Of a DNA stretch of 64,000 nt, positions 14,500 to 48,323 are shown in pieces. The stretch's first letter is position 1; each line of letters opens with the position of its first letter. Below the pieces are notes generated by a model. It saw only the letters and a program-made list of their open reading frames with translations. It was not told where the DNA came from and made no database searches. The DNA is from Vitrella brassicaformis CCMP3155 (taxonomy: Eukaryota > Protista > Chromerida), in the NCBI GenBank assembly GCA_001179505.1, contig CDMY01000258.1:1-64000 (forward strand), given 5' to 3'. The position numbers were made by a program, and so were the translations under genes.

Positions 14500-16551
14500 A
14501 TGTGGGTGGCTTCGGCTGTGATCCTCTTGTCATTGGTCTGGCCAACCATATGCATCAGCCGAGAAGGAGGCCCCGGCCTGCCATCATTTGCACTGAGACG
14601 GACAGCCTTCGCCGACAGTGCAAAGGCTTGGCCCGGAGGCATCCTGGAGGAAAATGCCGCTCAAGCACGGCCACATGCCACTAGCAATGGCATTTTCATC
14701 CTGGAGCCCCCCAAGCTGGACGAGCAATGCCTGGCGGACATCAAGAAGATCTGCCAGACGAAATATGTCTACTGCGACATACTGCAGGTATGTACTTGTG
14801 TACCTCTGTATACGTTGATGCAGTGATGCGTTCAACTTGGTGCAGGTCGAGGATAGTTTTACCTTCTGGAAGGACGGTGCAGTCAGGAAGTCACTTGCCC
14901 GAATGACCGACGGGGCGGAGATCGTCGTTGCCGGTGTGACGTACAGAATCAAGGTCTCGGCTGGATATTTTGGCATGGCAGTCTTCGCTGACGTCGATAT
15001 ATCGATGGGTGTGTGGGCGGGTGTGTGGGTTGGTGCGTGGGGTGTACATTTCCTTTGTTGTCGTACATTTCATTTGTTTTGTCGATGTAGCCGGCATCCA
15101 AAGGCCTGTGGGGTTCCCTGCTCACAAGCTCAAGAGATACACGTCACCAGGCAAAGCGAGACACAGCTGACTGAGCCGTGCCATGCATATGTCTCCGTCT
15201 GTCATGTGCGGTCAGATGATGAGCCGGTTAGGCTGATGCCAGTGGTCATCAAGGTGGCCAACATCGCGCACAAGGGCATGAGAGAGCTGCTGGCAGAGAA
15301 GAGGGCATACGAGCATCTGTGGCAACACATACAAGACGGGGCCATCGACCAAAGCAGCTTCCCTGAAATCCCCCGTTTCTACCCAAACCCCATTCCGGGA
15401 CGCCTGGCGAGCTACCTTATTATCGACCAGATGGACGGCATTGCCCTTGGCGAGGTGCTCGCGATGATGCGGAACCGGAAATAGACCCCACTGAAAATGT
15501 GCCGGTGACGGGCGGACTGTCGCTTGTTGACGGCAGTGAGGAGCTATTCCCCACTGAGATGCCTTTGGGACGCTTTCTGATTCTCCTGCTTTTAGAAGGA
15601 CTCTACCAAACGCACCGAAACAAGATTCTACACTGCGACATGAACGAGTCCGTGAGTACCTACGCACACAAACAACACACAAGAGACACACACACGTCTT
15701 TGCCGTGCATTGCCTTGTCCACACGTGCTGGACAGGGGAAACATTCTGCTGTCCCTTCGCCCATCGAGCGCCATCAAGATGCCTTTCGGCATACACATCT
15801 CAGGCAAGGTTCGTTCGTACGAGCATTTATATAGCATTTAATTGGTGCACGTGTGTGACGTCACCCTGCCCGTGGATGCAGGCGGGCAAGATGCTGCAGA
15901 CGGAGATATCTGCACACAACCTTCAGCTGATTGATCTGTCCAGAATAGCTGACGTTACTGACCGCTTTGTGGCCGAAGAGTGCAAAGACAAGACACAATT
16001 CGATGGTTCCTCGGTTGGCAGGCATCTCTTTGGCATCCTGCAAATCATGCTTATGCGCACCCCGGCCGATGCCAACGCCATGAGCATGATGGCTGTGGTG
16101 CTGGATCCTAGCAAATCATGTTTCGTCCACAGTTGCGACGCCCCACCTCTTCTGATCCGCCAATGGCTCAACACAGACCAATATCTTGAGGCCGCCCCAG
16201 GTACGCACACACATACAACAAACAAAGATATCTCATGTGTTGTCTAACTCTAAGTGCCTGTCTCGGGCAGAGGTACGTGCCCGAGTGGAGGAGTACCTGA
16301 AAGGCGTGGCGCAGTTCTTCTCAAGAAGTGGGAAGGACCACCGGGGATACTACAGCAGACATCCACAGGAGAGACGCCCGACTTTGGCGGCGGACGACAC
16401 AAGTGGAATTCTGGATTGGATGATTTCCACTTGTTCGGTCCTGGGGGAGGAGACATTCATGCGGGAGATGGCCGCTATTGCACTCAGTGGTGGCAAAACG
16501 ACAAGGATGAAATCGATTTCAGCTGCCTACATACCAGAGGGATGGGAGTGA
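14500..16551 (+). CDS. Secreted atypical protein kinase-like protein (one 1-bp frame lesion at ~15480)
   Basis: Signal peptide MWVASAVILLSLVWPTICIS; VSAGYFGMAVFAD, VVIK, ELLAEK, spliced ILHCDMNE-GNILL, QLIDLS. CGG AAA TAG at 15476-15484 needs one more A to continue into IDPTENVPV. Confidence 0.75.
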
Positions 16552-16716
16552 CGATGGGAGTGAGCGATGAATACGAGGCATGGATTTCGACGCGTGTTCA
16601 TAAGTGCGCGACCGGGACAAGACTCAGCGTCATTGTACAACTCCATGCAGACAAATGCGTCGCTTTGTCAACGGAATGGGGCGTCAGGGAAACCCAATAA
16701 GTCGTTTCTGACATAG

Positions 16717-16972
16717 TTCACAGCAGCCGACAGAAATCCCGGCCGCTACTCAGACACCTCTACAATGGCACTCACAGCCCCATTATCGGTAATGATCCCT
16801 ATCAGCACCACCAGCGCATCGATGGCCGCTCCCAGGATGAGGACATAGACAAGCGATGCATGAATTCATCCAGGACCTGGCCCCAGAATTCCAGGCAGTC
16901 TTGAATGAAGTGCTTCGCACCATTGCAATCAGAAGGCTGCAGCTCTTGACCGCTGCCTTGCCAGCTCGATGA
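16717..16972 (+). pseudogene. Orphan exon resembling the kinase-family C-terminal exon
   Basis: After the acceptor acatag it reads HSSRQKSRPLLRHLYNG...GNDPYQHHQRIDGRSQDEDIDKR, then after a -1 shift MHEFIQDLAPEFQAVLNEVLRTIAIRR...*. SQDEDIDK resembles SQQEDVDR of the kinase at 45-2918. Confidence 0.4.
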
Positions 16973-17101
16973 CAGGAGCCTTGAAAGAACTCAGGCGATG
17001 AATTCAGTCCGAGGAAATCTCCCGGGCTTGGGGGCCACCGCTAGCTTGCCGGCGTCTCGTCCGTTCTCTTTTATAGGTCAGCCTTCTGAGCCGTCCCCGC
17101 G

Positions 17102-18842
17102 ATGGAGCGTGAGCTGTACAGGTACCCCTCATGCAGTCTGTGCGTATGTGTGACATTGTCCGTCTGGGTGTGTGCGCTGATGGCGTCAAGTGGTGCTGAC
17201 TGCTGTGATTGGTGCTGCAGGTGGCTGCAGTCCCTTGACCTTTCCTACTCGGTCAAAAACGTCAGGAGGGACTTCTCAAATGGTGCAGTGCACACCCATT
17301 CCATTCAGCCCCACGTGGGCACAGGGAATGAGCATTGAGAGGCCTGCCTGTCTGCTGTGTGTATTCCTTTTCCTTCGTGTGCCAGGTTTCCTTGTTGCTG
17401 AGATTTTCTCCCGCTATTACCCGCAGGATGTGACGCTGCACTCGTACGACAACGCCTCCAAGCTGGCGGCCAAGAACAACAACTGGGAGCAGCTCTACAA
17501 GTTCTTCAGGCGGAAGAACATCCCACTCAACAAGAGCGACTTCGAGCCCGTCATCTACTCGGCACCTGGTCAGTCAGTCAGCAGCCACACCCACCATTCA
17601 TTGGCAACACAGAAGTCACAACAGTATGGTCCTTTTCTCTGCGCATGGTCGTATCGCAGGTGCGGCCATCATGCTGCTGAACAAGATATACAACTTCCTC
17701 ACCAAAAGGGCAGCCGACCGGTTCCAGGCGGAAGACATCATCGGCAAGACCCTCCAGGACCCCTTGCTGCTGGCCACTGCCAACCTGAGGGGCGCCCCGG
17801 TGACGGACGAACAGCCCCTCTACGCCAAACCCACCGCCTCGACACTGCTCAGAGACGCCGAGATCAACCGAATCGAAGACAAAGAGAAAATGACGGCCAG
17901 GGCCGAACAAGTTCTGCAGGCGCACAACGAGGTTTGCAAGAGAGATCTGTCGGAAGCGGTACTAGACTCCTTTGTGTCTCTTGCACGCTCAGAATTTGTC
18001 CTACGAGAGGAGCAACGAGCGCATGTTGCAGAGTATGAGGCCGCGGATTCAGCAGCTGGCTGTGGCGGCAGCGCGAGCCCCCTCGTCCAAGGCCATCAGC
18101 CCAGAACCCGACATCACCAATGTCGAAATCAAGGAGGTACACCTGGAGGCAAGACAGCGTTTCGTCTCTATTGATTGGATTCATGGATGCTGTTTGGCCT
18201 GCCTGCAGGTGGAGGTAGCGTCTATTGCGCAGGGCGGCACCATAGCACAGCTGAGGGCGCAGAAAGACCTGCAGCAACAGACTATCAAGTGGGAGGGAAT
18301 GGAGAAGCGGAGATTTATGGGAGAGCACCTGCATGTGTATGCATGTCGTGTCGTCAGATCCCGTTCATCTCAGAGGGGAAGAGAGTCGGCACTGGGCAAC
18401 ATCGAGGTGACACAATGACACAATAACGCCAGATACAGAGAGATACATGTGTCTCGGTGTCTGTGTGTGTCCCTTCCTGTGCCTGTGCAGTCCATGGCGC
18501 AGGCCGCCCCCGTCCCACAGGCCATCAGTAAGGGGCAAGATAGTTTGATCGAATCATTTGCTGGCAAGGGTGGGGTGAGAGTTGGGTGTTGGCTGTCCTT
18601 CAGCTGTGAAGCCCGTGCAGTCGATTCTGAGTGCACTCATGAGGCCGGCCCTCAGAGAACACCCTGGTGTGTGCGTCATACACATAGAGCTGCATCAAGA
18701 TAGACCAGTGTGTGCTGTGCTGTCTGGTCTGTCAGATGTCCAGAAGGCCCTCGATCCCCGGAGGGACGCCTTCTCCTCTTTCATGGAGATATGTGCCAGC
18801 GCATTCCCTGAGAGTCAGTCAGAACGGGCCGATAAACAGACC

Positions 18843-18875
<33 letters not shown>

Positions 18876-21832
18876 TCACCTTTTGTTTCCTTGTCTGTCT
18901 GCAGATGTGTGTGTGGGTGTCTTCGACACCGTTGCGAGCAGGGCGTCGCTGCTCACCGATTCCCTCATCAAGAGCCCCACTGTGAGAATGATTGCAATCA
19001 CAGTTGACGAACTCATGGGTTCTCGACCTTTCTGCATGTATGTATGCCTCCATTTTCAGGAGTTCTGGAAAGCTTGGACCCTCATCTACCCTGGTAAGCA
19101 AGACTAAAACACACAATTGAAGAAACAGGGAGTAGATAATCCATTCGACAGAGTCTCTTCGCCCGTGCATTTCCACACACACATCACATGTATGTGCGCA
19201 GCCTTGTGGGAGTTCAGCGGGTCCTCGCCTGTGTTCGAGTCGATCGTCTATCTGCTCAAGCGCATTGCAGAGTGTATCAGAAACGCCGACCCGCTCCTCA
19301 CACAGCAGGTGCCCATCCACGCCTCCACGCTCACAGAATCAAATTCCCAGGACCCCTCGTTTCTTCCATGTCATGCAGTATTTGATGGACGTGATCCTCC
19401 CGCAAGTGGCGCCGATCCTGGCCGCATCCCCAGGGAGGCGGGAGGCCTTGTGTGAGGTGCTGTACGCCTATGCACAGGAGACACCCGCCGCACACCTCGC
19501 TCTCCTCAGGGGACTCAAAGTCAGTCGCATCACGATAGATACGCAAGTAGCGACCGACCGGGATGGCTTCTCTTGTGTTGTGTGTTTGGTTGTGGACACA
19601 GGACAAGCTTGCGAGCGTGGCGTCGTATATTCTCTGTCTCTCATTTTTCGTCCCTCTCGACGAGACACACATGGTCAGAGCGAACAGAATGTCCACGCGA
19701 AGCGATCAAGGGCAGAGAGAGAGATATACGGGTTTGGCGCGTACGTGTGGCCAACGTCCGTATCCGTGTGGTGTGTGTGCACAGGACGACCATCTGCTCG
19801 ATTTGGCCCTTTACTATGCCTTGATCGGTCTGAGCCAGCCGCAGCCGTCTCTGCGCGTGGCGGGCCTGTCCATCCTCAACGGCCTGGCCAACATGATGGG
19901 CGACCAATATGCCGCTATCCTTAACCTGCTGCGTACAAATGCACCGCCCCACAGACACGTACACTCTCGACGCACATGTGTGTGTGTATGTGTTTGCCAC
20001 ACACACCTACAGCGACCTTGATGGATCTGGGGAGCGATGAGTGGTGGGAGGTGGAGGCCCAGCTGATGGTCCTCACGTCCACCCTGCTGCTGAAGCTGTC
20101 CACCAACCACCCAGAGGTCACCCAACACCTCGCACACAAGTCCATCGCGCCACCCCCGATGCCGACACGCAGCGAGCAGCGGCGGGCGTCCACCACACCA
20201 CCGCTGGCCCTTGCGGCGCCACTGGATGTGGTGCTGGGAGAGGGGGAGGGGGAGGACGAGATTGAGGCCAAGGAGAACGCCATGATGATTGAGTATGCCG
20301 AGCAGCTGCTCATGCTCGTCGCGAGGACCTTCCAGCTCTCCAAATCAAAGTGCGGACGTATGTACGTGTGGAGTGAGTGGCTGGACCACCTGCTGGTGCT
20401 GTGCTGTTTCTCTCCTGTTTGGTTCAGGAATGTGTTGCAGATAGGATTGTGTTGCCTTTGTCGGAACCTTGACGCCTTCCCCTCACTGGCCGACATCTAC
20501 ATCACAGTACGTACAGTCAGTGAGTCGACTCCCATCCACGTTTGCTCACACACGTCTCGCTTGCCACAGGTGTTGCTGGCCCATCCCGCCCCGATGCGTC
20601 AGCGGCTGCTGATGCCGCGGGGCGAGGGCGCGGAGACACAGGCGCCAAGGCTCGCATACGTGAGTCAGCAGGAAGATCGCGGTCGCTCTCCTGCTTCCAT
20701 CACATCACATGACATTGTCGTTTGTTTGTCTGTGTGTGTCGTGCAGGTGATGGGTGCGGCGTCTCGGCTGTATGAGGAGCCATACCTCCCCGCACTCTGG
20801 TCTGTCGGCCTCACCTAACACGCAGGCGCCGCCCACACAGATTGAATCTTGATTGAACGAATGAATGATCGGACTTGCAGGCCGTCGCTGAAGGTGGCCA
20901 AGGCGTTCTGCTCACAGGCAAGTCAGACCACCACGCCACGCCTCACGCAAAGCCACCTGTTTGTCGTCCATGTGCACAGCTGGAGGCCCGATCGCTGACG
21001 CATTTCGAGTTGGAGCACCTGGAGGTCCTCATCGCTACGCTTCCAGAAGACGGTAAACAGGGCGAGACACGCAGAGAACCTGTGTCTCTGTCTGTCTGAT
21101 TTTATCCGTCGATCCATTGATCAGACTTCGCTGCGTCAAGTGAGGTGATATCCGACTGGCTTGACCTCTTCGACCGTCTCAAGGCATACATATTCGTCGC
21201 TCTCATCGAGGAGGACTTCCACGACCACGCCGCACAGATCGTGAGTATCCGTCCATCCATCTGTCCATCGACACGATGTGACACAGAGATACATATGTCT
21301 GTCTCGTGTATGTGTGTGGGACGCCCGGCAGATAGCCAAGTTCTGGTTGAGTGGTGTGGAGGAGCTGCGGACGCCGGTGCTCGACGCGAGTCGGAAGACG
21401 CTGCTGCAGACGCTGAGGATACTCTACAGCGAAGGCATCGAGCGATCAAAGGCACTGATGGATGGATGGCTGGACGGGAGGGAGAGGGAGGGAGACACGC
21501 GTGGACGGTCGACGATGCATCCCTGTGTGTGTGTATCAGGTTGCCGAGAGTGTGCTTGTTGAGTTCCTGCAGGACATCCACAGCGAAGGTAGGACGGCAA
21601 AAGAACAGGAGCGGCTCATGTCATGTGTGGGCATTTTCTCTTTCTGTTTGGTCCTGTCAGGTCCGCCCGTGTCTGAGCTGATCGACGACGTGCTGCAGAT
21701 GTACAAAAAGGTAATAAGAGGCAAGAAAGCGCTAGTATATGTGTGTGTGTGTGTGTGACCTGGTCTCTTCTTTCGTGTGCCCAGTCTGACCCCGATGGCT
21801 TCGCCTCAACCAACCTGGTGCACTTCATATGA
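17102..21832 (+). CDS. SPATA4/SPEF1-like calponin-homology (CH_2/DUF1042) protein with a long helical C-terminal region
   Basis: Spliced N-terminus [40 protein letters not shown]...[10 protein letters not shown] is the SPEF1/SPATA4 CH signature. Many further exons run to [15 protein letters not shown] (TGA 21830-21832). Confidence 0.8.
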
Positions 21833-32402: not shown

Positions 32403-34201
32403 ATGCAACAGCCGGCGTCACAGACAGCGGCAAGCAGTGCTGCCGAGGCCTCCCAGCAGGCCCAGAGCGGCACACAAGGCGACCAGGAGACGGCCTTCTA
32501 TGAATCGCAGCGACGGGTGGGGAAAATGACCCACATGCACCTACAGGTGGCGGGGGCATGCTGGTAATTGTGTTTGTTTTGTGTGTGTGTGTGAGTGTGT
32601 GTGTGCAGCTGGTATTACACGACTACTGCACGGGTGAGTTTGTGGAGGAGACCCTGGCGGTGCTACCGCAGAGGTTCACGTCGCTCGAGCAGTACCGCAT
32701 GTGCTTCATTCCCGCGGTCAGCCACTGGCCCACATACACAGACAGACAGACAGAGTCCCATCTGTGTGTGTGTGTGTGTGTAGGCTGAGGCCAACATCAA
32801 GGCCGAGATCTACGCGTCCATCTGCCAACTCAACCACAAGCGCCAGCTGTGAGAAAGCAACGAGGAGGTCACACACGTGTGCACCCGTCGTGTGTGTCTG
32901 TGTCTAGTGAGATGGTGCTCTCTGTGTCCACCGAGCGGCGATTTGTCCACGGTCGGTATCAAATCGCCTATCAGTGGGCGAGCAAGGAGGACTTCAAACA
33001 GGACTGCGTGCGGGCGCTCCTCCACACCAACGAGGTGGTGCTGGTCTACGACAGGAGCCTCGACATCACCACCAAATTCGACCTCAAGGTGGCCGACGCA
33101 GAGGAGGGCAGATGGGCGCTGGGAGTCATCGACAAACACAGATCACTCAGCCACTGGTCAGCCAATACAGCGAGCCCACCCCACCATGTGTGCCGGATAT
33201 ATGTATGTGTATATGTGGTTTATCGATCTCCCTCTCTCTCTCTGGGTGTGGTGTGGTGTGGTTTGGTGTGTTGTGTGCAGGGACGACATAGAGGGGTTGC
33301 AGGAGCACGACAGGCGTGAGCAAGACGGGCGCGACGGCCGCGGCAGGGGGCGCTTTCCGGCAGGAGCAGCAGCGGGTGGCGGTGGAGGGAAGGGTCGCGG
33401 CCGCGGGCGGGGCATCGTTAAGGGCCAGCAGGGTCCGCGACCGCCTCGCGGATTCACCGGCCCGCTGTACGAGGGCGAGTCGTTCAACAACGGTGCGGCC
33501 GATGAGCAGCAGGCCACCCCTGGTGACCCCGAGCAGCTGGACATACGGCACCGCATGACGCTGACCGAACTGACCGACCTCGGACAGCCAACCACGGTGA
33601 GAGAGGGCCGGGAGAGGGTGTGGGTCTAATGGGTGTTGTTGGTGTTTGTCCATGCGTCTGATAAACTTGTTAGGTGATCAACTTCTACACGTGGTCTGCG
33701 GCGGTGCCTGCGTTTGTCCAAAACGCCGTTACCAACGTCATGGTCATCCCTCTCGTGCAGGTGGGTGCATTCATGAGATTAGATGCACTTCACCCGTACG
33801 TATACATTCGTGTGGGGCTGTCTGTGTGTGTTGGTGTGATGTGACGCAGATCCCAACATCGCTGCGCGCCGGCCTCCTGAACCCCACCACAATAGGCCCT
33901 GAACTGTGAGCGCAATGCCACCTGACCTGCCAACAGAGCAAAGCCACCCAACGTGTGTGTCGTTCAGTGTGCCGGAGGTGTTGGGTGTGCAAGCGGAGGA
34001 GATCGACAGCAAGGACCAGCAGATCGCCGCACAGGCCAAGCAGTTCCTCGCGGAGAAGTTTCAGGCGGAGAATCCACATGCACAGGTGCTGCCGGTGACC
34101 GACCAGCTGGCCAATGACATCTGCCAAAAACTGAGACTCAATCAAAGCCAGGCCACTGCCGTCAAGGTGACTCTTCCCCTCTCCCTCCCACCTACCACAC
34201 A

Positions 34202-34236
<35 letters not shown>

Positions 34237-35281
34237 GGAAAGGGAGAGAGATCCATGTGCGTGTGTGCGTCTGGTGCAGGAGTGTCTGGTGAACCCCACT
34301 CGCCGGGTGCAGCTCATCCAGGGCCCCCCTGGGACCGGCAAGACGTCCACCATCGCTGTCATGCTGGCTGCCCTCGCCCTCTGCGGCCGCCGCACGATGG
34401 CCGTCTCACACACAAACATCGCCACTGCTGAGGTAAACAAGGAGGGAGGGAGGGAGGGAGGGACACTGCACGCATCCACACGTATCTGTGTGTCCATCTG
34501 TCCACGTGTCAGATAGCGCGGAAGTTCCTGACTCGTTTGGTGCGGCACACCGACCCTTTGGAGCTGCTGATGGAGAAGCCGAAGCTGCTCGTGCCGCAGT
34601 CCTACCCGCTCGACGACAGGCGCATGCGCCGCGCGCCGAAGACACACGAAGTGGACCACTTCCTGCCGTCGCACATTGTCCTGGTAAGTCTGTCTGCAGT
34701 GTGCGTGTGTGTGTGTCCGTATGGTTGCAGTGGTGCTGTGTGTGCGTGTGTGGCTGCAGGTTGGTTCGGAGGGCCGAGTAGACACGCGTGAAGGCATAGA
34801 CGCCATTTGGGTATGCGCGTGTGCCAGGGGGGACGGAGGGAGGGAAGAATATGCATTCATGGGGTGGGGCGTTTGTGTGGCGTGTGTGTGTTGTGTTGCA
34901 GGCCGACCATAGAATCCACATGCTTCAGGCGAGTGTGCGGATCATTTTGGAGCTGCTCCGGGGCATCAAGGGCCGGTACAGGCCCAGCACCATACAGAAC
35001 TGGATGAAGCTGCCATGGACCGTTGACACCACACAGGAGGACCGTAAGACATTCATCCACACACACATCCACACACACACAGAGGGATGGGTGTGTCGAT
35101 GGGTACGTTTGTGTGTGTCAGGCATTCCGTTTCCCGATGGTGCAGCTGAGATCTACGCCGCGTTTGACAAGTATCTCAGGCTGATACGCATCAACGGACC
35201 ACCGCCCAGATGGTACACACACACATACACACACACACACACAGATGCACACGTGCGTGTTGGTTGTGTGTCCTGTGTATA

Positions 35282-35313
<32 letters not shown>

Positions 35314-38300
35314 TGTGTAGGGCTGCGCACCAGAAGATCGAGACGTGGCCTCGTACCATCACAGACGAGATTCTCTTCCTGGGCGTCCTCTTCCTGGTGC
35401 CTTAAATGCATATACACATATCACACCAAGGGAGAGTGCGAAGAAGGGGAGGCGAGAAAAGGCCAACCGACCTGCATCGTGAACCCATGGTTGGTCTCTT
35501 GTCGCTTCTCATTGTCCAGCAAGCCTTCGCTCGCCGCTCCCAACTCCCCGATAGGCCTCTTGTAACAACAACACCCCAACACCCCAACACCCCCCCACAC
35601 AGAGAGAGAGAGGGATTCGTGTTTTGTTTATGTCGGTTATCAGGGCGAGAGGACTGACGATGTGCTGCCGATGATGTACCGGACGATGGTGTGGTTCAAC
35701 TGCCCCGGGCGTGTGCCGCCCCCCACAGAGGAACCCCAGCGCATCGAGATTTGCGAGAGCCCTGCACCACACATCATGTAGCGATGCGATCGACGCACAC
35801 TTACACACTTACACGCACATCGTGGTGGCTGGAGAGGAGATGCTGTGGGTGTGGTTGGTTGTCTGGTGCCGTGTGTGTCACTCACACATGGATGGCCATG
35901 ATATGGATGCAGGCCGAATCTGGTCGATTTGATGGCGGAGGATACCTCGGCTGGCGTGCTGGAAGAGGCGCTGGAGAGGATCCGCTTGCTGCTCTACCGC
36001 AGACTCGTGGACGTCAACCAACGCAACTTCTCGCGTAAGCAAAAGGGGATGGATGGATGGATGGATGGTCGACTCGTATGTGTATGTGTGTGTCTGTGGT
36101 GGTCAGATCGTGTGTTGAACAAGATGTTGGTGGACAGCGCGTCAGTGTGCTTCTGCACCACAACAGTGGTACGGTAGTTACGTGCGTGTGCACGGCGGGT
36201 GGGTGCTGCTGGTGGTGTGTCTGCATGCCCTCCCTCCCCCCTCCCCTCCCCGTGTGTGTCCTTGCGCCATTCAGGCATGCAGACGATTGTTCAACGACAT
36301 GTGGTTCCACACACTCGTCATCGACGAGGCCTGCCAGGTCACTCTCACTCTCATCCCCCCTCCCGGACCGACCCCCATTGCCCATGGTGGTGTGTGTGTG
36401 TGTGCGTGTGTGTGTGCAGGTGTTGGAGAGCGAGAGCCGCACGGCGTTCAAGGCGTGTTTGGAGGCGGCCATTCTGGTGGGCGACCACAAGCAGCTGGGG
36501 CCGATTGTCATCAGCAACGCGGCGTCGGAGAGCGAATTCAAGCGGTCGCTGTTCGAGCGGCTCGTCAGCAACGGACACCCCTTCATCAGACTGCAGACAC
36601 AGGTGGGTGTGAACGAATGCAGTCAAGACAGAGAGAGAGAGACGCATGTGGTCCATCCATCCATCCATGTGTGTGTGTGTGGGTGTCTGTGTGTGCAGTA
36701 TCGCATGCGGCCGGAGATTGCTGCCTTCTCTGTCCGGGAGTTCTACGAGAGTAAGCCCGTACTCACACACACGTGCGCAGGACAGAATCGACACACGATG
36801 GGCAGCTGCAAATGTGTGTGTGTGTGTGTGTGTGTGCAGATGCCGTCGAGAATGCCGGCAACGTGACGTCGGAGGAGTGGTCCAAACCGTGGCACTCCTA
36901 CAAGTCAGCAGCCCCCCCCTCACACACACACACACACACAGATGGCCACCATGTGTGTGGTGAATTGGTGCACATGGCAGGCACGGTCTGTTCCCGCCAT
37001 TCTGTCTGTTCGACACGAGCAACGTGTCGCGCGACCTGGTGCACGAAGCCCACGACTTGACCTCCACTTTTGCCAACAGCAAGATGAACCAGGGCGAGGT
37101 CGACGTCATCATCGCCCTCCTCTGCTGGCTATACGACACCTACGAACACCTCTTCCCGCCCATAGACACCCACCTCGAGGACACCGACCTGCCCATCACT
37201 GCCAATGTCACGCCGATGGACATCGGCATCATCGCGCCTTACCGTCGGCAGGTCCGGGCGGCTGCCATTGGGGCCACACAGACTTCACACACTCGTGTGT
37301 GTTGTCCATGTGTGGGTGCAGATTGAGTTGATCCAGGAGCAGCTGGCGGCGAGGATCCCGCGGATGCTCAACTACGTCACCATTGCCACCGTTGACGCCT
37401 TCCAGGGCCGCGAGAAGAGCATCATCATCTTCAGCGCCACACGAGCCAATGCACACGGTAGGTAGGGTGCACACACATGACCACAACACACGCACGGATG
37501 CACTGACAGACACTGATAAAATAAACACATCACACCCTCCTGTCTGTGTGTGTTGATGATCAGGTGAGATTGGCTTCACCAGCGACGCCCGCAGGCTCAA
37601 CGTCGCCCTCACTCGAGCCAAACACTCCTTATGGGTACGCCCCCCGGCACACACACACATGTGGATGGATGGATGGATGGACGGATGGACACAGTAATGT
37701 CCGACAGGCAGACGGTCTGCCAAGGTGCCCTTGTGTGATGTGACCTCCCTGCTGCTGTCTGTCTGTCTATCTATCTGTGTACGTGTGTGTCAGGTGATCG
37801 GCCACATGAAGACCCTCGTGCAGAACAAATGCGCGCGCAGGCCGATGGGGTCGCTGTGGTGAGAGGGTCTTAAAGAGCATCACGCCACACATATCAAAGG
37901 AGGCAGCCAGCGATCAAGCTGCATCGATCCCTCTATGTCTGTGTGTGTATGTGTGTGTGTGTGTGCGTGTGTGTGTTGACTGACTGACACACAGGGAGGA
38001 CCTGCAGTCCCACGCGTTGGTCATGGCGCAGCGCACCCAGGCCTCCGATGACAACCTCCTCTCAGCATTTGTCGACGTGGCCCATGAGCCAAGGCTCATG
38101 GAGTTCGTCGGTATGTGCACACACAGACACACACACTCACACCCAGGCACATCCACCTGGCCCCACCCTCTCTGCGCCTGCAGGACTGTCAGGGAGCAGT
38201 GGGGTGGCCCGCCGTGACCCCCTGATGACGACCATCAAGTCTTCCTCGCTGCTGGGAGCCTTCACCTTCCCCGTGCTGATGTCGTCCCACGCCATCAACT

Positions 38301-41300
38301 GGCTCATGGCCATGGCCAGGGGCCACTTTGACGTGGGCACCATCAACAAGATCAAGGTCTGCATCAGAAATCTCGCCAGGGGCAACCAGGATGTCCGTCG
38401 TCGCAAGCTCCTGATATCCGCCACTCAGAGGCCGTAGGCCTGCATCAACGGGCAGCAGGGGCCACAACACAAGACAAGACACACAGGTGGCGTGCCCTTT
38501 GTGTGTGTGTGTGTGTGCGTCTTTACGTGTGGGATCGAATCTATCACCGCCAGCAACATCGAAGACCTGTTGATCTTCGAGGAGGCCGTCCAGCAGACAC
38601 CTTTGGTCATCATCTGGAGCATGGCGCTCGACGACGCAACCAACGGCCAGGCAGTCCGAATTTGGACCATCGAACACAGAACAAACCGCACACGTGAGCG
38701 ACGCGAGCCACCGACCGACCTAACGGTGGTGTTGGGTGCATCACAGAGCTCTGTGTGTGTGTGTGTGTGTGTGTGTGTCAGGGTCGTCCTACGACTACGA
38801 CGGCAGGATTCTCGCTTGGACTCATTTCAACGTCCACACGAGCGAGTACCGCAGGGCGTGTCTGGCCCACGGCGACCTCGAGGACATCAAGAGGCGCCCA
38901 GACCGCCCCCTGCCCAACAAGGACGTCCAGATCAACCCCGGCTGGACAGACAACCGTGAGTGGCGCGCGGTGAAGAAACCTGACCATAGGAGTGCGTCGG
39001 CAGCATCGGGTGGTGACAGCTGGGGTTCGCCGGCGATTGAGAGGCTCAGCGGGGCTGAGTGTGAGGTGAGGGGCTACGAGATGGAGACCATCGACATCGA
39101 GGACGCCGAAGGCGAGCCACTGCTCCCATTCCTCCCCACACATCGCACCTTCCACCGAATGAACAGGTCAGTCAGTCAGTCAGTCTGCCCCCACCGCCCC
39201 ACACCCAGGCGCATCCACCCTGTGTGTCTGGTTTCTTTTCCTCGCCGTCCGGCCAGTGAGTTCTTTGGCCACTTCGTGGAGCTGCTCAAGCACGTGTGTG
39301 AGTCGGCCGGTTCGTCCTCATCTGGCCCGCTCGCCGACAGGCCCGCCGCCGAGCTGGAGCTCTTCCACGTGTCGGGTGGCCACCGTGCGTGGCCCCCGGC
39401 CCTCGACTACCGCCTGCAGCGGATCGCTGCCGACGGTGGGGCCTCGCTGTTCATCATGGGCACCGCTGGGGCCGGCAAGACCAATGTCCTCATGGCCAGG
39501 TGAGTGGGTGAGACAGGCAGCCTGAGGCAGGTGCATATGGATGGATAGATGGATGGCGTGTGTGTCGCAGGATGCGTCAGGTGGAGCAGGAGTGGGTGGT
39601 GCGTGAGCATGTGGGGCTGCGGCCGCTGACCGAGCACGGCTGGGGCGGTGAGGGGGGGTGGCGGCAGGGAGACGACCCCGAACAACTCAGAGAGGACGAC
39701 CCCCGGATGCTCACACAGCCCACATGGAATGACTCTGATGGCGACAATGACGCACAGGCAGCGCCTGTCCGTCCAGTCAATCCCTACCCCGCGCCGTCCA
39801 TTCTCCTCGTCGCAGCCGACGACGCCCTGGCAGACACCCTCCGGCAGCAACATGAGCTGCACCGAAGCTGGAGTCGCCTCTCGGCCCCCTCGCCCAGCAA
39901 GCTCATCAACGACGGCAAGGCGCAGCAGTACGACTGGATTTTCCAAAAGAAGAAGGACGGCCTGCCCCTCTACGTCCCGCCGCGTGTCGAGGCCCTGCGC
40001 GACGCCATCAACAGCCGCATCCACCGGGTCAGCGGCAACCCGCCAGATCCCATCAGGTCGGAGCCGCTGTTCAGCCGGCAGGTGTTCCGGCTGCCTGAGG
40101 GGCGATCAGTGTGCTCAAGGGAGGCGGGGGCCGCCGACGACGGTGCCGGGGCTGGGGGAGGGGCGGGGGCGGCCGATGACTGCCATCCTGCCATCGTGGG
40201 GCCGAGGGCGCTGCTCGTCTCTGTCGACGGTACACACACACACACACACGCACACACAGATGGGAACCTCCCTTTATCACTGTGTGTGTCTGTGTCTGTA
40301 TGTGTGATGCAGAGAATCTGATCGACCCGTTTTTGGACCATCCCGACCTCCCTGGTCGTCACAACCTGTACCCTCTCGCGCGAAACATCCGACGAGTCGA
40401 CATACGAGTGGGTACACACACACACACACACACACAGAGTGATGCCCACTGTCGCTGGACAATGCAGGACGAGGTGACGTTCCGCGAGTTCTTCGAAGGC
40501 TTTTGGCCCCACATCAAGTGGTATATGAACGGGTGGCTTAGGGAGCTCCAGCACAGCAGGAGCGGCCGCATCATCGACATGGACCTGCCCGACGACATTA
40601 GTGCGGAGGACGTGACGCGCTGCGGGCTGGCCGAGTACCTCACCCACCCAGACGGCACCTACGATTCCAAACACGAGACTGGACTGGTGAGTGTGTGCGG
40701 TGGGTCAAAACAGAGAGAGAGAGAGAGAGAGATGGGTGGGTGCGTCCGTGTTGGGTGTGTCTGATATGGTCAATTGGTCAATCAGGGGTATTTGGTGTGG
40801 AGTGAGATCATCTGTTCCATACCAGCGCACCTCTCCACCACCCAGCGCAAGAAGGACGAGAAGCGGCTCGAGGCCTACCTCTTCCTCCGCTGGGGCACCA
40901 CCCGCCCCCGAATCACATTCGACAACGACGGCAACACCGCCAGCCCTTCGCCCTCTTCACCATCAGTATCATCATCATCAGCCGCAGCAGCAACAGCAGC
41001 AGCGGAGGGGCCCACAGTGGTGGACGAGGACACCTACGGTCAGTACGGCGGGAACCCCATGGCCCTGACGGCGAGCGAGTACCTGCAGCAGGCGGAGCGG
41101 ACGGGGCGGCCTGCGTATCTGTCTCGGGGCGACCTGGTGGTGGTGTACGCCATGTGGCGGCAATACGCCCAGATGAAGGAGAACAGGGGCAGGGGCGAGT
41201 GGGACAGAGCCGACCTCGCCACACATGCACTGGTCGGTCAGCAGACAAAGAAAGAGGCGATGGTGTCTGTGCATATGGATGGGATGATCCGTCTGTGTTG

Positions 41301-43858
41301 CACATGGGTGACATGGAGGTGTGGGTGTGTGTCAGGTGTTGCTGTCTGCTCATGCTCGTCGTGCGTATCGTGGGAGGGTGTTCGACTACGTCTTCTGCGA
41401 CGACGTGGACTTGTGGGCGCCAGTGGAGGTGGCCGTCGCATTCCACCTGGTGGGCAGCAAGCGACGCATCGCCATGGCCGTCTCGCAGGTACGCACACAC
41501 CCCCCTCCTCCCCCCCTCCACAGCTCATTATTCCAGCGATGGACACTTGCATGGTGCGTCTGTCTGTCGTGTTAGGAGGGCGTGCTCGGCCCGCAGACAT
41601 GCGACAATGTCTTCCCCATGTACTCCAAATTCATACGTACGCCACACACACGTCACCACCCGACAGACAGACGGTATTGGTGCGTGTGTGTGTGTGAAGG
41701 CTCCCGCGCCCAGCTGACGCCGCCGTCGATTCTGCTTCACTCGTGCCGGTCGACCGAGTTCCTGACGCTTCTGGCCGCCACTGTTGTGAAACCTCTGCGC
41801 CGGCTGCTGAGTGGCAAGACGATGCTCTTGAAGAAGGGACAGCTGCACACCGATGACAGCGACCACATCGCCCGGGCACTGTCAGTACCCGCCAACAGAA
41901 GATACAACACCGTCGAGCAGCAGCAGGTGGGGAAGAGGGTGGGGTGGGTGTTGGGAGAGCAGGTGGGGGCATCCATCTATCCATCCATCCATCCATCATG
42001 TGTGTGCAGGTTGACGGGCCCGATGCGCTGCCCGACGACCTGGTCCGTGCGCGGCGGGAAGAGGCCGACACACGTGCCCTGCTGTCACTCCGTCGCCAGG
42101 GGACCTTCCTCAAGCCATCGCTCCTGCTGCTGCCTGAGGAATGGCTGGACTTGAGGAATGTGCCGCACGAGGCGAAGGCGGACCTTCTGTTCGAGGCGTT
42201 CCAGCTGGTGCAGCCCCAGTTCATCGACAGCCGGCGGTCTGTGGGCGACCACACAGGTGGGTGGTGCGCAGAGATCCATGCGGATGGATGGATGTGCTGT
42301 CCTTTGCAGTGGCGATCGTTGTTCGGCGGGAGTACGACGTAAAAATGGTCGCGGAAGCACTGGCAGATATCACTCAGGTGCGGACACACACACACACAGA
42401 GATACCTATACAGACGCAATGATCCCGCCCCGCCCCGCCCCAGGATGACAAGCACAACGGCCGCTGGCGATGGCAGCGGATAAACTGTCACGACAGCGCT
42501 CAACGCTCTCGCCTGCATCTGCGTCACCGCCAGCGGTCGCTCTCGCCAAGCCGCCGGTCTGCGCACTCGGGGTCGTCTCCGGGCCTGTCACGTGCCACTG
42601 TGTCGAGCCGTGAGGGGCCTGTGGCGGGCCGTGACAAGGATGAGCGCTGCGTCATCCTTGTCGAGCGATTCGACGACCTGCTCGCACTCAATATGGAGTT
42701 TGATCAGGTACGCTTAAGAAGGGCGGGAGAAGGAGCAGAGGAGAGGACACGAGATGGATGGATGGATGGATGCTCTCTCTCTCCCTGTCTCTGCGTCTCT
42801 CTCCTCTCCTCTCCGTGTGTGTCGATGTGTCGATAGGTGGTAGTCTACGATTTCTTCTTCCGTTCGGAGCAGCTGGATTTGGTGTGGATGCAGCCGTGGG
42901 TTGGCTGGGTCTTGGAGAGCTTCCAGTCGGGCGTGCCCTTCATGCCCTACGTCCAGCAGTTCCCCGTCGACGTCTCCAACCTCGTCGATGAGCTCCGCCT
43001 TCTCTACGCCATCATACGCATGGCCAGGATCAACGTCAGCTTCATTGAGGTGCGGCACACACACACACACATTGACAACACAGAAAGCCCACATGTATTC
43101 CGATGTCATTTGTGTGTGTGTGTGTGTTGGGGGCCGTGTGTGTCATGCAGTCGAGTCCCGACTCGTCCGTGGCACTGAGCGCCTGGTGGTCGGCCCGGGG
43201 CATCGTGGACGTCCATGAGCTCGCCAATGTCCGCAGGCAGGACCAGCGGGGCCGCCTCGCGCTAGAGCTCAGCGGGTCGCCGCAGAAGCTCTTCGATCAA
43301 CACAAGAGGGCCATCGCCCGGTGCGAGCAAGAGAGCCAGCAGATGAAGCAGCAGATGGAGACGAGCACCCGCAACAACAACACCGGAGCTGCTGCTGCTG
43401 CTGCTGCTGTTGCTGTTGCTGTTGCTGCCCAGCCATCCCGCCCCTCCCGTCCAGCAGCTGCAGCAGCATCATCAGGGCGTGGCGGGCGTGCTTCCCCCGC
43501 CCCATCCTCCATCGCACCCATGGCACCCCCCCGTCCACACGCACCGTACAACGACACCAACAACCGAGACCGAGGCGGCCGCTACCCTGACGATGACCTT
43601 GAGGATCTGCCGATGCCGCCGCCGCCCAGGGACCGTCGAGGTGGCAGTTATAGGTGGCAGCAGCGTGACTTCCGTGACGACTGGGCGGACGACGACAGCA
43701 GTGAGGATGGTGACAGCAGCTACGAGTACAGCCGATATGGGGGCGGCGGGGGTGGGGCGTACCAGAACTCCTGGCAGAACCAGCAGATGAGGGGCGGGTA
43801 TGATGACTATTATTATGGCTATGATGACGACGCGCGGTCGGACTACAGCTACCGGTGA
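32403..43858 (+). CDS. Double SF1 helicase: UPF1/senataxin-like (AAA_11/AAA_12) + probable RelE-like domain + degenerate UvrD/TRANK1-like helicase
   Basis: QGPPGTGKT (34319-34345), VIDEACQ (~36317-36337), LVGDHKQLGP, RSLFERL, LQTQYRMRPEI, IGIIAPYRRQ, TVDAFQGREK, RRLNVALTRAK. Second module: IMGTAGAGKT (~39453-39482), VTFREF, FDYVFCDDVD, LNMEFDQVVVYDFF, ELRLLYAIIRMAR. Splice phases are consistent at the ~10 junctions checked from 35.6 to 41.7 kb. Confidence 0.85.
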
Positions 43859-44355: not shown

Positions 44356-47300
44356 ATGAGTTCTGACAACGTCGGGTCGCCCAATGGCGGCTCTGCGTCG
44401 ACGTTTGCCGAGAAGCACCGGCAGCGTACGGAGAAGCTTCGTCAGGACAAGGACAGCCGGCGGGCCAACGAGATAGACAAGATGACCAACGAGCGGCTCG
44501 AGAGAGAGCTCAAGGCCAAGGGCATCCCCACTTTCGGCACCAGGCAGGAGAGAGCGGCGAGGCTCAAAGTGGCCTGCGGTATGTATGCTACTCCCAAGTG
44601 AACCCACAAACACCCGAGAAGCACACACACCTGTATTTCCCTATGTGTGTGTGTCTGTGGCACGCGGCCTGTAGGTCTGCCCGCCAGCAGTGATGCTGAT
44701 GAGAAGAAACCGGGCAAGGCCAAGAAGGGCGGCGTGGTGGAGGAGATCGAGCGACTCAGGCAGCAGAGAGAGCAAAGACGGCGCAAGATGGAGGAGGACC
44801 GCAAGACCAAGGAAGACGAAAAGAGCCACAACGAAGCCATGGGCCTCCCCGGCGACGTCGACTTCCAAAGGATGGTCACGCAGTTCCGGACCGATTCGAA
44901 GAGCGGCAAGGCCCTCTCGCCCATCATGGGACAGGGGGCTGGGGGGAAGGGCTCGTCGCAGGCGGTGGGCATCTGGGTGTGTGTGCGAAAGCGGCCTTTG
45001 AACGACAAGGAGGTGGGGCGGCGGGAGATCGACACGGTCACAGTGGTGAACCCCAAGTGCCACGTGCACGAGTGCAAGTTCAAGGTGGACGGCATCACCA
45101 AGTTCCTGGAGAACCACCACTTCGCATTCGACCGGACCTTCACCGACTCCACACCCACACAAAGCGTAAGAAACAGACACACACATATATTGCCGAATAT
45201 GGATGGGCAGATTCATAAGCCATAAGCCATTCGGTCGGCCTTTGTCTCGTGTGATGTGGTCAGCTTCACGAGTGCTGCAGCAGGCCATTGGTGGACTTCG
45301 CGCTCAGAGGGGGCGGCAGGCGTGCCACCATCTTTGCGTACGGCCAGACGGGGAGCGGCAAGACCTACACGATGAGAGGGATGCAGTCGCTGCTGTGCTC
45401 GGACCTCTATGACGGCCTAGAGGGCAACCCCCACAAGGACGATTTGGACGTGTCGGTGAGCTTCTTCGAGATCTACGGAGGCCGCGTCTACGACCTGCTC
45501 AACAATCGCCAGAGGCTGCAGGTGCTCGAGGACGCTAAGCAGGAGGTGAGGTGGGTGGTGTCTGAAGGGTCCGTCAGGAGCCGGCGGGGGCGTGTTCTTG
45601 TCTGCAGGTGCAAGTGCAGGGTTTGTGTGAGCGGCCTGCCAAGAACGCCAAAGATCTGCATGACATCATCGGTAAGCTAGCTATGCATCACACCTACACC
45701 GTGGCGTCGGTGTCTCATGCCGCGCCTCACCCCGCATGCATCCGTGTGGTGTCTCGTCTCTGCGTGCAGAGTATGGGCACTCAGTGCGCACCACCAAGGC
45801 CACATCCACCAACGCAGGTATGCAGACCAGACACACGTCAGTCACAACAAAAAAATGGAAATCAAGCGCCGCACCCGTGTCCCTCCATACGTCTCTGTGA
45901 TGTGCACACACAGACTCCTCCCGCTCCCACGCCGTGTGTTGCATCGCGCTAAAACTGCCCCGGACCACCCCGCTGCCCAGCCCCCCCGAGAGGAAGCAGC
46001 TGGTGCCGCAGCCCCCACCCGACAAATTCACAGTATATTCGAAACTCACACTCGTCGACCTGGCCGTACGGACGGACACTTAAGCAATAAACAAACAGAC
46101 ACCAGCCAGCCAGCCAGCCAGCCAGAGACAATTCATTCATGTGTGTGCCTCTGTGTGTGCAGGGCAGCGAGAGGGCGCAGGACACGCGGCACCACAACCG
46201 CGCCAGACGAGTCGAGGCCGCAGAGATCAACCGCAGCCTCCTCGCACTCAAAGTCAGTACGTCACCTTACACACACAGACAGAGAATGGATGTCTCTCTC
46301 TCTCTCTCTGTCTCTCTGCAGGAGTGCATCCGTGCATTGGCTGTTGAGAGCTCCAGTGGGCCGCCCGCTAGCCAGGCTGGCGCATCGCCATGGGCGTCAC
46401 CGTCCGGAGCTGGGGGTGGGGCGGGGGGTGGCAGCGGCTCGCACATCCCGTTCAGAGCGTCCAAACTGACGATGGTCCTGCGGGAGTGCTTCGTGTGCAG
46501 CGCTTCCCGCACACTCATGATCGCATGTGTATCACCAGGTGGGTCGGCTGCAGACGTCAGACATAAAGTCGAATGTGCGTGTGTGGTCTGGCTCCATCCA
46601 TCCATCCATCAGGGATGGCGTCGGCAGACCACACGCTAAACACATTGCGTTATGCGGCGCGGCTCAAGGAGACCCCAGACAGTCCCCAGCCAGCAGGCGT
46701 GGCGGGAAGCTCCCCACGGCCACCTCAGTCGGCACCTGCGTCACCCGCCGTGCATCAACCACCCGAGCCAACAGGTAACGAGTGCATTGGCTTAGACCTT
46801 GCCACGCGACATTGTCCCGGCTCGGTTGGTTCAGAGGCCGGTGGTCCCGGATTTCGTCTGCCGCCTCGTGCAAAGTCCAAAGCCGCGGTCGCCCCCTCGT
46901 CCCCCCCAGCCCCCCGCCCTCCCCCTCCCTCCCACCCGGTCAGAGATGCCGACCGGGTACCCCTCTCGCCGATACCCCCACCAAGAGGGTCCAAACGGGC
47001 CGCCGGTGGAGCTGCGAGTCCGCCGCCCCCCGCACCAGGCCCCGCCCCCATCCCCCACGCGGCATCGTCCCCTGCACCCTCCTCATCCACACACGCACCG
47101 GGGAGCAAATCGCCACCAGAGCCATCCGCTTCGTCAGGTGAGACACGGCCATGTACTCTGCTGCTAGGGATGTGATGTCTGTCGGTGCTGCTAGGGGTTC
47201 CTGAGGCGGAGAGTGACGCGTCGCCCAACGAGGGTGAGGAGGAGACGGAGGCCGAGGGAGAGGGAGAGCCTGAGGACGGGAGACACCTGGCGAGGGTGTC

Positions 47301-48019
47301 TCGGGCTGACATGGACTTCCTCAAAGAATCGCTAACGAAGCAAGGGGTGGGTGGGGTGGCGCAGAACACACAGATGTGAGGTGCATGAGAGGCTCTGTGT
47401 TTATCCATCCATCAGATGGGGGAGGCCTTGGCCATCACGGACTCGGAATATCTGGAGGTACGGACACACATCCATCCATCTGTACTGCGATGGACACACG
47501 TATATGTGTCTGTCTCTCGTGTCATCTCTCACAGACTGTGGAGGATTTGTATGAGTGGGAGGATCGCATCACACGGACACACATGAGCACCATGAAGGTG
47601 ACAGACACCCACAGCCAGCCAGCCAGCCAGACAGACAGTATGTGGCCTGCTACAGGAGGACGCCAACATGCTCACCATGGAGGGCGAACTCATGAAGAAG
47701 GTAAATCAACAACAACTCGCCCATCCACAACTGTGGTCAATTGCTTGCGCGTCTGCGTCATGGGCGCAGTTCCAAGATGACGATGGGTACGAGCTTGAGG
47801 ACTACGTGGAGGACATTGAAAAGATTGTCGAGCGCAAGGTGCATCTGTACAAGGGCCTGCTCAAAACAATCAGCAAAGTCAAAACCATCATGCAGCAAGA
47901 GGAGACGTCGTACAAGAAGGTGTGCTGTATGTGGCCGATGGTCGGTGGACGTGCCTATGCGATGGATCGTTGTCTCGGTGCGTGGCTGTGTGCAGGCCGA
48001 GCAGCGAGACAACAAGTGA
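44356..48019 (+). CDS. Kinesin-13 family microtubule depolymerase with an N-terminal SAP-like motif
   Basis: VCVRKRPLN, KVD finger (CKFKVDGITK), FAYGQTGSGKTYTM, NADSSRSHA, LVDLAGSERA, AEINRSLLALKECIRAL, HIPFRASKLT, TLNTLRYA, and a C-terminal coiled coil. Confidence 0.95.
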
Positions 48020-48323
48020 CTTCACTTAAGGGGCGTGCCTTCCGGCCAAAGGCTGCCGTGACGCCGTGGCGCTGCAGTAGCGAGATCTGTATGTCTTTCT
48101 TCTGCTGGTCCGGCAGTGTCTCGATATGTGAATCATCGATGTGTACACATTGGCGATCATTTGGACAGTGTGACGCGCTGTATGTATCGTGCCGTGCCGA
48201 GTGGCCATGACGCAATGACGACGACTCTGCATGCATGCGCCCAGTCGCGATCATCGTCTGTGCGAGCTCGTGGGCGTCTCGCCCGCAGTCATTCTTGTGA
48301 CTACGCAGTCGTTCTTCTGACTC

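Follow-up and report, generated by a model that had tools for sequence, protein, structure and literature searches.

The 64,000-nucleotide stretch of Vitrella brassicaformis CCMP3155 contig CDMY01000258.1 that was analysed here (the window) contains a multi-exon gene on its forward strand at approximately 32500 to 43855. Between the exons of two helicase modules this gene encodes a segment that lacks an obvious counterpart among annotated domains, which raises the question of what kind of domain a eukaryotic gene places at this position. An earlier note on the same DNA had read the segment as a RelE/ParE-like toxin domain, likened it to the segment in front of the helicase of TRANK1 and regarded it as an effector that would be controlled by its flanking nucleoside triphosphatases (NTPases). 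The analysis presented below led to the view that two exons, termed A and B, perhaps together with the start of a third exon C, probably encode a conserved accessory domain of approximately 110 residues that adopts the RelE/ParE fold and precedes a UvrD-like NTPase of superfamily 1 (SF1), and that an Upf1/Sen1-like SF1 helicase has been joined to the front of this pair. The domain is regarded as a putative ribonuclease (RNase) in the respective protein family and as a probably attenuated copy in the window.

Identification of the exons that encode the segment

The gene and its exons A and B were deduced from the open reading frames (ORFs) and the DNA sequence of a region that has a G+C content of approximately 58% and short GT-AG introns rich in (GT)n. 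Translation of positions 38183 to 38434 (+) yielded the peptides FTFPVLMSSHAINWL... and TINKIKVCIRNLARGNQDVRRRKLL, which are the first two stretches quoted in the earlier note, and translation of positions 38555 to 38695 (+) yielded the third one, NIEDLLIFEEAVQQTPLVIIWSMALDDATNGQAVRIWTIEH. The quoted peptides are thus real and are encoded on two exons of the forward strand. According to translation and hhalign alignment, exon A (38184 to 38433) specifies the predicted N-terminal half of the domain, comprising strand 1 and helices 1 and 2 followed by the residues KLL, whereas the predicted beta-sheet half with the motifs IFEE..., VIIW and RIWTIEH is specified by exon B (38554 to 38693). With a slash marking the splice border, exon A is delimited by the acceptor ...gcag/ga and the donor cc/gtaggc and exon B by the acceptor ccag/c and the donor c/gtgagc. 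The intron of 120 bp that splits the domain (38434 to 38553; GTAGGC...CCAG) contains a (GT)n tract and an in-frame TAG at 38435 to 38437, and the splice phases of both exons agree with those of their neighbours, ...MEFV/G upstream and R/SSYDYDG... downstream.

All database queries with window sequences were single exons, searched one at a time. Exons A and B matched no family in Pfam, NCBIfam and PADLOC, no PDB sequence in a phmmer search and no viral contig. The ESM Atlas likewise contained no relative of the two exons, with a score of 0.80 for exon A and a score of 0.91 for exon B, the latter being of low recognition and referring to unnamed short or beta-propeller-like fragments. A phmmer search of 1.84 billion representative proteins with exon A returned two repeat-driven false matches only and did not retrieve the window's own protein. 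Repeats of the TGGATGGA type, which are read as GWMDGWMDG, recur in the introns of the window and therefore give rise to spurious protein matches. A search of the V. brassicaformis genome itself with exons A and B detected no paralogue, and the ParE toxin model PF05016 was found nowhere in the whole genome.

A paralogue with the same domain order and a protein family with the pre-helicase domain

For the detection of paralogues, a 1.5-kb region behind each AAA_12 locus was scanned throughout the genome, a eukaryotic 72.7-Mb assembly of 1064 contigs. This approach identified a gene on contig C329 (G000:C329:15133-19770, minus strand, loci L030/L057; gene read over 15133-20599), in which a low-complexity linker of approximately 300 residues connects AAA_12 motif VI to the pre-helicase domain, and this domain precedes a UvrD-like helicase with the canonical sequence LGRSGTGKT. 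The domain is composed of the piece KWEISVSAAFLARVNG...KKIIQLIKG and, behind an intron, the piece ...KELWELAV...SLIWWVRIDD...TILVFDLV, which is followed by LFVLGRSGTGKT; the intron is located at a different place than in the window domain. By its nature and its position this segment corresponds to the domain encoded by exons A and B. Its two pieces aligned to the domain family profile described below with P values of 0.019 and 0.11 (hhalign), and a word search with its beta-sheet exon remained blank.

A search of metagenome contigs with the Walker A exon of the C329 paralogue provided six relatives, and the metagenome relatives L215, L216 and L218 are intron-free. L216 contains an ORF of 1302 residues (36% G+C) with a contiguous domain at residues 567 to 688 (L216:1742-2107:+), which is located directly before LLGRSGTGKT and a Pfam UvrD-helicase/UvrD_C core, and the same domain is present in L215. 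The relative L218 (L218:336-3914:+; metagenome contig Ga0194125_10044802), whose source may be bacterial, has an ORF of 1193 residues that starts with the domain at the very N-terminus and continues with a UvrD-like helicase, marked by GSSGTGKT, and with an extended TPR-like array; this is the most TRANK1-like architecture among the relatives found.

A word search with residues 567 to 1066 of the L216 ORF retrieved 351 proteins at E<=1e-5, so that the family comprises at least this number, and the following description refers to the best 120 of them. According to precomputed Pfam data, 117 of these proteins match the UvrD-helicase model PF00580; members of the family also match PF13361 and PF13538, and the UvrD-like SF1 core lies directly after the domain. 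The domain itself was located by a local jackhmmer search in nearly all of them, including 111 copies that span at least 85 residues. The family is mostly of stramenopile origin, with diatoms and chrysophytes as its main sources, and several paralogues are present per species, for instance in Cylindrotheca closterium, Chaetoceros tenuissimus and Thalassiosira profunda. The proteins comprise 700 to more than 2200 residues, and many of them carry ankyrin (PF12796), TPR (PF13414/PF07719), ubiquitin or MYND-finger parts. The Walker A sequence GRSGTGKT is common to the family and the C329 paralogue. In several diatom members (P0046, P0058, P0060, P0062, P0067, P0069, P0092 and P0112) ubiquitin-like domains (PF00240, PF11976) are located before the RelE-fold domain and the helicase, and other members have MYND fingers or ankyrin arrays.

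Alignment of the window exons to the protein family

The individual exons were aligned by hhalign to the 111-column profile of the family domain, with 300 shuffles each. Exon A aligned with residues 3 to 59 on columns 3 to 54 (score 19.25, P 0.0037), and this score was reached by none of the shuffled sequences; exon B aligned with residues 3 to 45 on columns 53 to 92 (score 13.9, P 0.037), with 12 of the 300 shuffles reaching the score. The two exons accordingly cover complementary halves of the domain that abut at columns 54 and 53. A separate hhalign comparison with the 48-row family alignment A2 placed exon A on residues 6 to 43 and exon B on residues 58 to 97 of the L216 domain. Of 13 nearly invariant family positions, 10 are kept or conservatively replaced in the window.

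The same type of comparison was applied to seven window exons and the full family profile of 978 columns, along which the exons align in strict order. Exon A occupies columns 201-252 (P 0.048) and exon B columns 252-290 (P 0.088). They are followed by the Walker A exon of helicase 2 with the sequence LFIMGTAGAGKT (39240 to 39499; columns 290-399, P 0.0012), which contains the second Walker A motif of the gene, GTAGAGKT, at approximately 39470 and also resembles the Walker A exon of the paralogue (z 7.6), and by exon D1 (40471 to 40690; columns 477-544, P 0.099), the conserved part of exon D2 (41050 to 41259; columns 520-583, P 0.00068), the Walker B region (41360 to 41485; columns 586-625, P 0.002), in which YVFCDDVDL replaces the family consensus YVDEVQD, and the motif VI exon with LLYAIIRMAR (42837 to 43052; columns 764-824, P 0.002), all on the forward strand. 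With seven weak P values and a fixed order of the exons, a chance alignment is judged unlikely, and the window segment is very probably homologous to the family domain. The exon structure, the presence of two NTPase modules and the ordered homology of seven exons also confirm the position of the segment between two helicases, as stated in the earlier note, with AAA_11, AAA_30 and AAA_12 matches by Pfam on the upstream side and the Walker A exon and the ordered UvrD-like exons on the downstream side.

Predicted fold of the family domain

The fold was predicted for family member L216, which stands in for the window domain. Calculation with AlphaFold2 from L216:1742-2107 and alignment A2 resulted in a model with a predicted local distance difference test score (pLDDT) of 87.3 and a predicted template modelling score (pTM) of 0.82. 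The model has the order beta-alpha-alpha-beta-beta-beta-helix, with strands at residues 7-10, 48-50, 58-62, 68-77 and 87-97 and helices at residues 12-20, 24-38 and 100-121. The earlier note had proposed a Foldseek comparison of the segment with RelE/ParE structures, which was carried out on the L216 model. Nearly all of the first 45 or so ranks among the PDB entries were RelE, YoeB, YafQ, HigB or ParE toxins, including archaeal RelE proteins, E. coli RelE (4fxe_E; E 9e-3, target-normalised TM score 0.74) and the YoeB/ParE entry 6n90, which showed the highest target-normalised TM score of 0.78 with a root-mean-square deviation (rmsd) of 2.7. A comparison with VIA-align likewise assigned the top 50 PDB entries without exception to the RelE/ParE superfamily. 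In this comparison, Z scores of 9-11.5 went with rmsd values of 2.2-2.9 over 80-99 residues. The highest Z scores were obtained with 6af4 (11.5), 6af3 (11.2) and 6n90 (10.0), followed by E. coli RelE (4fxe_E; Z 9.0, rmsd 2.2 over 80 of 82 residues), ParE2 (5czf; Z 9.0) and the CARF-RelE protein Cami1 (Z 8.4). L216 is therefore predicted to adopt the RelE/ParE (BECR) fold, which is defined by an N-terminal strand, a helical hairpin and an antiparallel sheet of three or four strands.

Searches with sequence models gave a different picture. In Pfam the family domain matched no RelE/ParE-type family and produced only weak sub-threshold matches to unrelated models, and the window and C329 pieces showed no significant hhalign similarity to 35 ParE_toxin sequences. 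The NCBIfam model TIGR02683 (RelE/ParE family toxin) matched weakly at the domain in 3 of 48 members, with a best E value of 0.008 that is far below the cut-off; in P0107, which bears the JGI name 'putative component of toxin-antitoxin plasmid stabilization module', the match covers residues 644 to 713 and lies at the correct place. The threshold of the curated RelE/ParE models (Pfam PF05016 and its relatives, NCBIfam) was reached neither by the window exons nor by the family. The RelE/ParE-like nature claimed in the earlier note is hence supported indirectly with respect to the fold, through the homologous family and its predicted structure, and leaves hardly a trace at the sequence level.

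Conserved residues and evaluation of alternative explanations

In the numbering of the L216 domain, five positions are nearly invariant among the 111 members, namely Lys48 (kept in 108), Glu60 (108), Arg68 (110), His100 (106) and Arg116 (107). The catalytic residues of YoeB are Glu46, Arg65 and His83, and those of the RNase RelE are Lys52, Lys54, Arg61, Arg81 and Tyr87. Arg68 in the 'RILW' strand probably corresponds to the arginine in the 'RLVY' ('YRLVY') strand of RelE and YoeB, and His100 is located just after the last strand. The near-invariance of Lys48, Glu60, Arg68 and His100, in parallel with YoeB and RelE, speaks for a putative RNase site among the family members. The favoured explanation includes a domain layout in which one strand and a pair of helices precede three or four strands and a C-terminal helix and in which these four residues would form an RNase site of the YoeB/RelE type, and the family proteins would act as helicase-coupled endoribonucleases, possibly on ribosome-bound mRNA. 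The occurrence of several paralogues per diatom species, combined with the exchange of ankyrin, TPR, ubiquitin and MYND parts, suggests a role in surveillance or defence. The window retains the lysine (RRKLL), the glutamate (IFEE) and the histidine (TIEH) in the hhalign alignment, and it would represent an attenuated or an RNA- or ribosome-binding version of the domain.

Several observations weigh against this explanation. The connection between the family and the RelE/ParE proteins is carried by predicted structure and not by sequence, since the hhalign comparison of the family with the 35 ParE_toxin sequences, which were taken from 151 bacterial genomes, gave a probability of 1%, and no RelE/ParE sequence model matches exons A and B. 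The fold of the window domain is supported indirectly, as it was read from L216, and AlphaFold2 modelled exon A alone as two helices of low confidence (pLDDT 57). The significance of the link between the window and the family is modest for each exon; an hmmsearch with the family reached no more than 4 bits for exon B and did not detect exon A, and pairwise comparisons of the window with the C329 domain pieces were not significant (z 0.2-1.8). Regarding the proposed activity, it is the conserved residues that point to an RNase role of the family members, the ParE-type members of the fold are not RNases, and the position of Arg68 is occupied by valine in the window (PLVIIW). The window copy without the invariant arginine may therefore be non-catalytic, and the combination of valine for arginine with the eroded motifs of the second NTPase makes it more likely that this copy is attenuated, or solely binds RNA or ribosomes, than that it is a fully active toxin-type RNase.

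These observations can be accommodated in different ways. A possible, although in our view doubtful, explanation is that the domain has the RelE/ParE fold without being a nuclease in any member and has a role in binding or regulation, for instance by providing the UvrD-like motor with an autoinhibitory lid or with a surface to which protein or RNA can dock. ParE uses the fold without RNase activity and ParE2 scores like the RNases in the structural comparison, the hhalign search revealed no sequence link to RNase subfamilies, and the conserved arginine is missing from the window copy as well as from the C329 paralogue, which lacks the histidine in addition. A conservation of 95-99% for Lys, Glu, Arg and His in the 111 members is nevertheless typical of a catalytic site, and the parallel of this set with the catalytic residues of YoeB likewise speaks for a nuclease. 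It appears improbable that homology to the family is confined to helicase 2 and that the window segment is merely a divergent linker with a chance match. Such an assumption would agree with the weak P values per exon (0.004-0.05), with the failure of hmmsearch to detect exon A and with the blank phmmer search of the 1.84 billion representatives, but it leaves unexplained that, within the 978-column profile, each of exons A and B aligns to its proper half of a 105-column domain and the two halves complement and adjoin each other, that these exons lie directly before the Walker A exon, which aligns next in order, that the score of exon A was not reached in 300 shuffles and that most of the nearly invariant positions are preserved. 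It is still far less probable that the exons are unreal and result from a wrong gene model with chance open frames in GC-rich DNA. The gene model was indeed predicted from DNA alone and the protein is missing from the representatives; the canonical GT-AG sites, the consistent phases over four consecutive exons and the ordered alignment of the exons to a protein family are at variance with this idea. A RelE/ParE-fold accessory domain, with a putative RNase site in the family and attenuation in the window, thus remains the favoured explanation.

Organization of the gene and additional loci

Helicase 1 of the window gene belongs to the Upf1/Sen1-like SF1B group, since AAA_11 and AAA_12 with motifs I to VI were detected exon by exon with Pfam. 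Its Walker A exon (34286 to 34477; GPPGTGKT) is covered by matches to AAA_30 (1.1e-8), AAA_19 and AAA_11 on 34118-34513 (residues 57-120). Motif V of AAA_12 is encoded at 37316 to 37456 (2.4e-10, profile positions 120-165) and motif VI, which marks the end of the core, at 37563 to 37637 (9.2e-9, profile positions 166-190); the whole-genome profile search placed the corresponding PF13087 matches at 37316-37468 and 37557-37637. Linker exon X (37999 to 38110, with an approximate 5' end; ...HEPRLMEFV/G) is an open frame with a GTATGT donor at 38111 and a phase that fits exon A. Exon C (38782 to 38955), which follows the sheet, was assigned by its splice phases, and its sequence SEYRRAC resembles DEYLHRC of the paralogue without significance (pairwise z 0.7). 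All of these exons lie on the forward strand. Helicase 2 is a divergent UvrD-like P-loop module with DDVD in place of DEVQD in motif II and an eroded motif III, and its exons, searched one by one, matched no Pfam helicase and no PDB sequence. Neither ankyrin nor TPR matches were obtained in the exons of the window gene that were scanned. No antitoxin-like exon was seen in the gene at approximately 32500-43855, and the domain is encoded in the interior of this eukaryotic gene of many exons.

The gene ends at 43400-43855 with a low-complexity tail that is rich in alanine and then in arginine, glycine, tyrosine and aspartate (...RGGYDDYYYGYDDD...) and recalls the RGG- and YG-type tails of RNA-binding proteins. 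Nearly every intron contains a (GT)n/(CA)n microsatellite, for instance at 37940-37975, 38500-38518 and 38752-38778. The downstream neighbour at 44600-48200 (+) is kinesin-like, with the motor motifs FAYGQTGSGKTYTM, SSRSH-like and LVDLA distributed over many short exons.

Additional candidate loci in the genome were examined and rejected. A partial duplicate of helicase-2 exons on contig C624 (G000:C624:112799-114150, minus strand; L005, L006 and L015) contains neither the RelE-like part nor a Walker A motif. It shows 66% identity over residues 94 to 160 of exon D2, includes the Walker B exon and the piece CHPAIVGPRALL and looks like a gene fragment or pseudogene. The locus on C505 encodes an ordinary UvrD protein, and those on C1040 and C495 have PAP_assoc matches and no double helicase. 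A search of bacterial genomes with a degenerate DNA pattern for GRSGTGKT led to ClpX, ABC transporters, AddB and IstB and to no relatives.

Comparison with known systems and biological meaning

The L216 domain shares with the RelE/ParE toxins the predicted fold and topology, a conserved arginine on the strand that would be equivalent to 'YRLVY' and, probably, the position after the last strand that is occupied by histidine or lysine. In contrast to these toxins, which are free-standing, the domain is internal to large eukaryotic proteins, located before a UvrD-like helicase and not accompanied by an antitoxin gene; it also stays below the threshold of the RelE/ParE sequence models, and its window copy lacks the arginine. 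Owing to the missing antitoxin, the internal position in a large protein and the failure to match the sequence models, the domain is not classified as a classical RelE/ParE toxin.

A closer analogy is provided by the multidomain RelE fusions of prokaryotic defence, which the family would resemble most in its mode of action. The CARF-RelE protein Cami1 (PDB 8phj/8phb) likewise consists of a RelE-fold module fused to a sensor or motor domain and aligns with the L216 model at the Z score given above. A bacterial helicase with an N-terminal RelE-like domain has been described next to the Tiamat type I-K system (bioRxiv 10.64898/2026.09.30.754977), and it shows the same order of RelE-like domain and helicase. 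Helicase fusions of RelE are not listed by Gerdes 2025 (PMC11980606). Unlike the prokaryotic fusions, the present family occurs in eukaryotes, namely in diatoms, chrysophytes and V. brassicaformis, is expanded and carries eukaryotic adaptor domains, and the window gene has a second, Upf1/Sen1-like helicase upstream. A literature search, which did not cover all journals, found no paper that describes the domain, although it may already be known to specialists.

TRANK1, the TPR and ankyrin repeat-containing protein 1, combines both types of repeats with a C-terminal UvrD-like P-loop helicase; its gene is interferon-induced, has no known function and is linked to psychiatric disease. Many members of the family resemble this architecture by the combination of ankyrin, TPR and PF00580 parts, whereas the window gene differs from it by the additional Upf1/Sen1-like helicase and by the absence of ankyrin and TPR matches in the scanned exons. 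No TRANK1 sequence was among the phmmer matches of exon A to the representative proteins or among the proteins retrieved by the word searches, which covered a limited band of protein lengths, and a full-text search of the literature on TRANK1 in connection with RelE, toxin, domain architecture or ribonuclease yielded nothing relevant. As a tentative hypothesis, which we consider unlikely in its full extent, the pre-helicase RelE-fold domain might define a class of eukaryotic helicase-coupled endoribonucleases, that is, a toxin-derived and possibly ribosome-dependent mRNA cutter that is gated by one or two SF1 motors, serves translation-linked surveillance or antiviral defence and extends to TRANK1 in animals.

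RelE/ParE proteins are usually viewed as small proteins of bacteria that serve addiction or defence, and here their predicted fold is a constant constituent of several hundred large helicase proteins of eukaryotes. If the link to TRANK1 is true, this protein would gain a testable biochemical activity, and a concrete activity that can be tested is likewise proposed for proteins that are otherwise unannotated beyond the name 'UvrD-like helicase domain-containing'. The data suggest that in eukaryotes a toxin-derived module for RNA cleavage has been incorporated into machines driven by ATP, similar to what bacteria have done with CARF-RelE.

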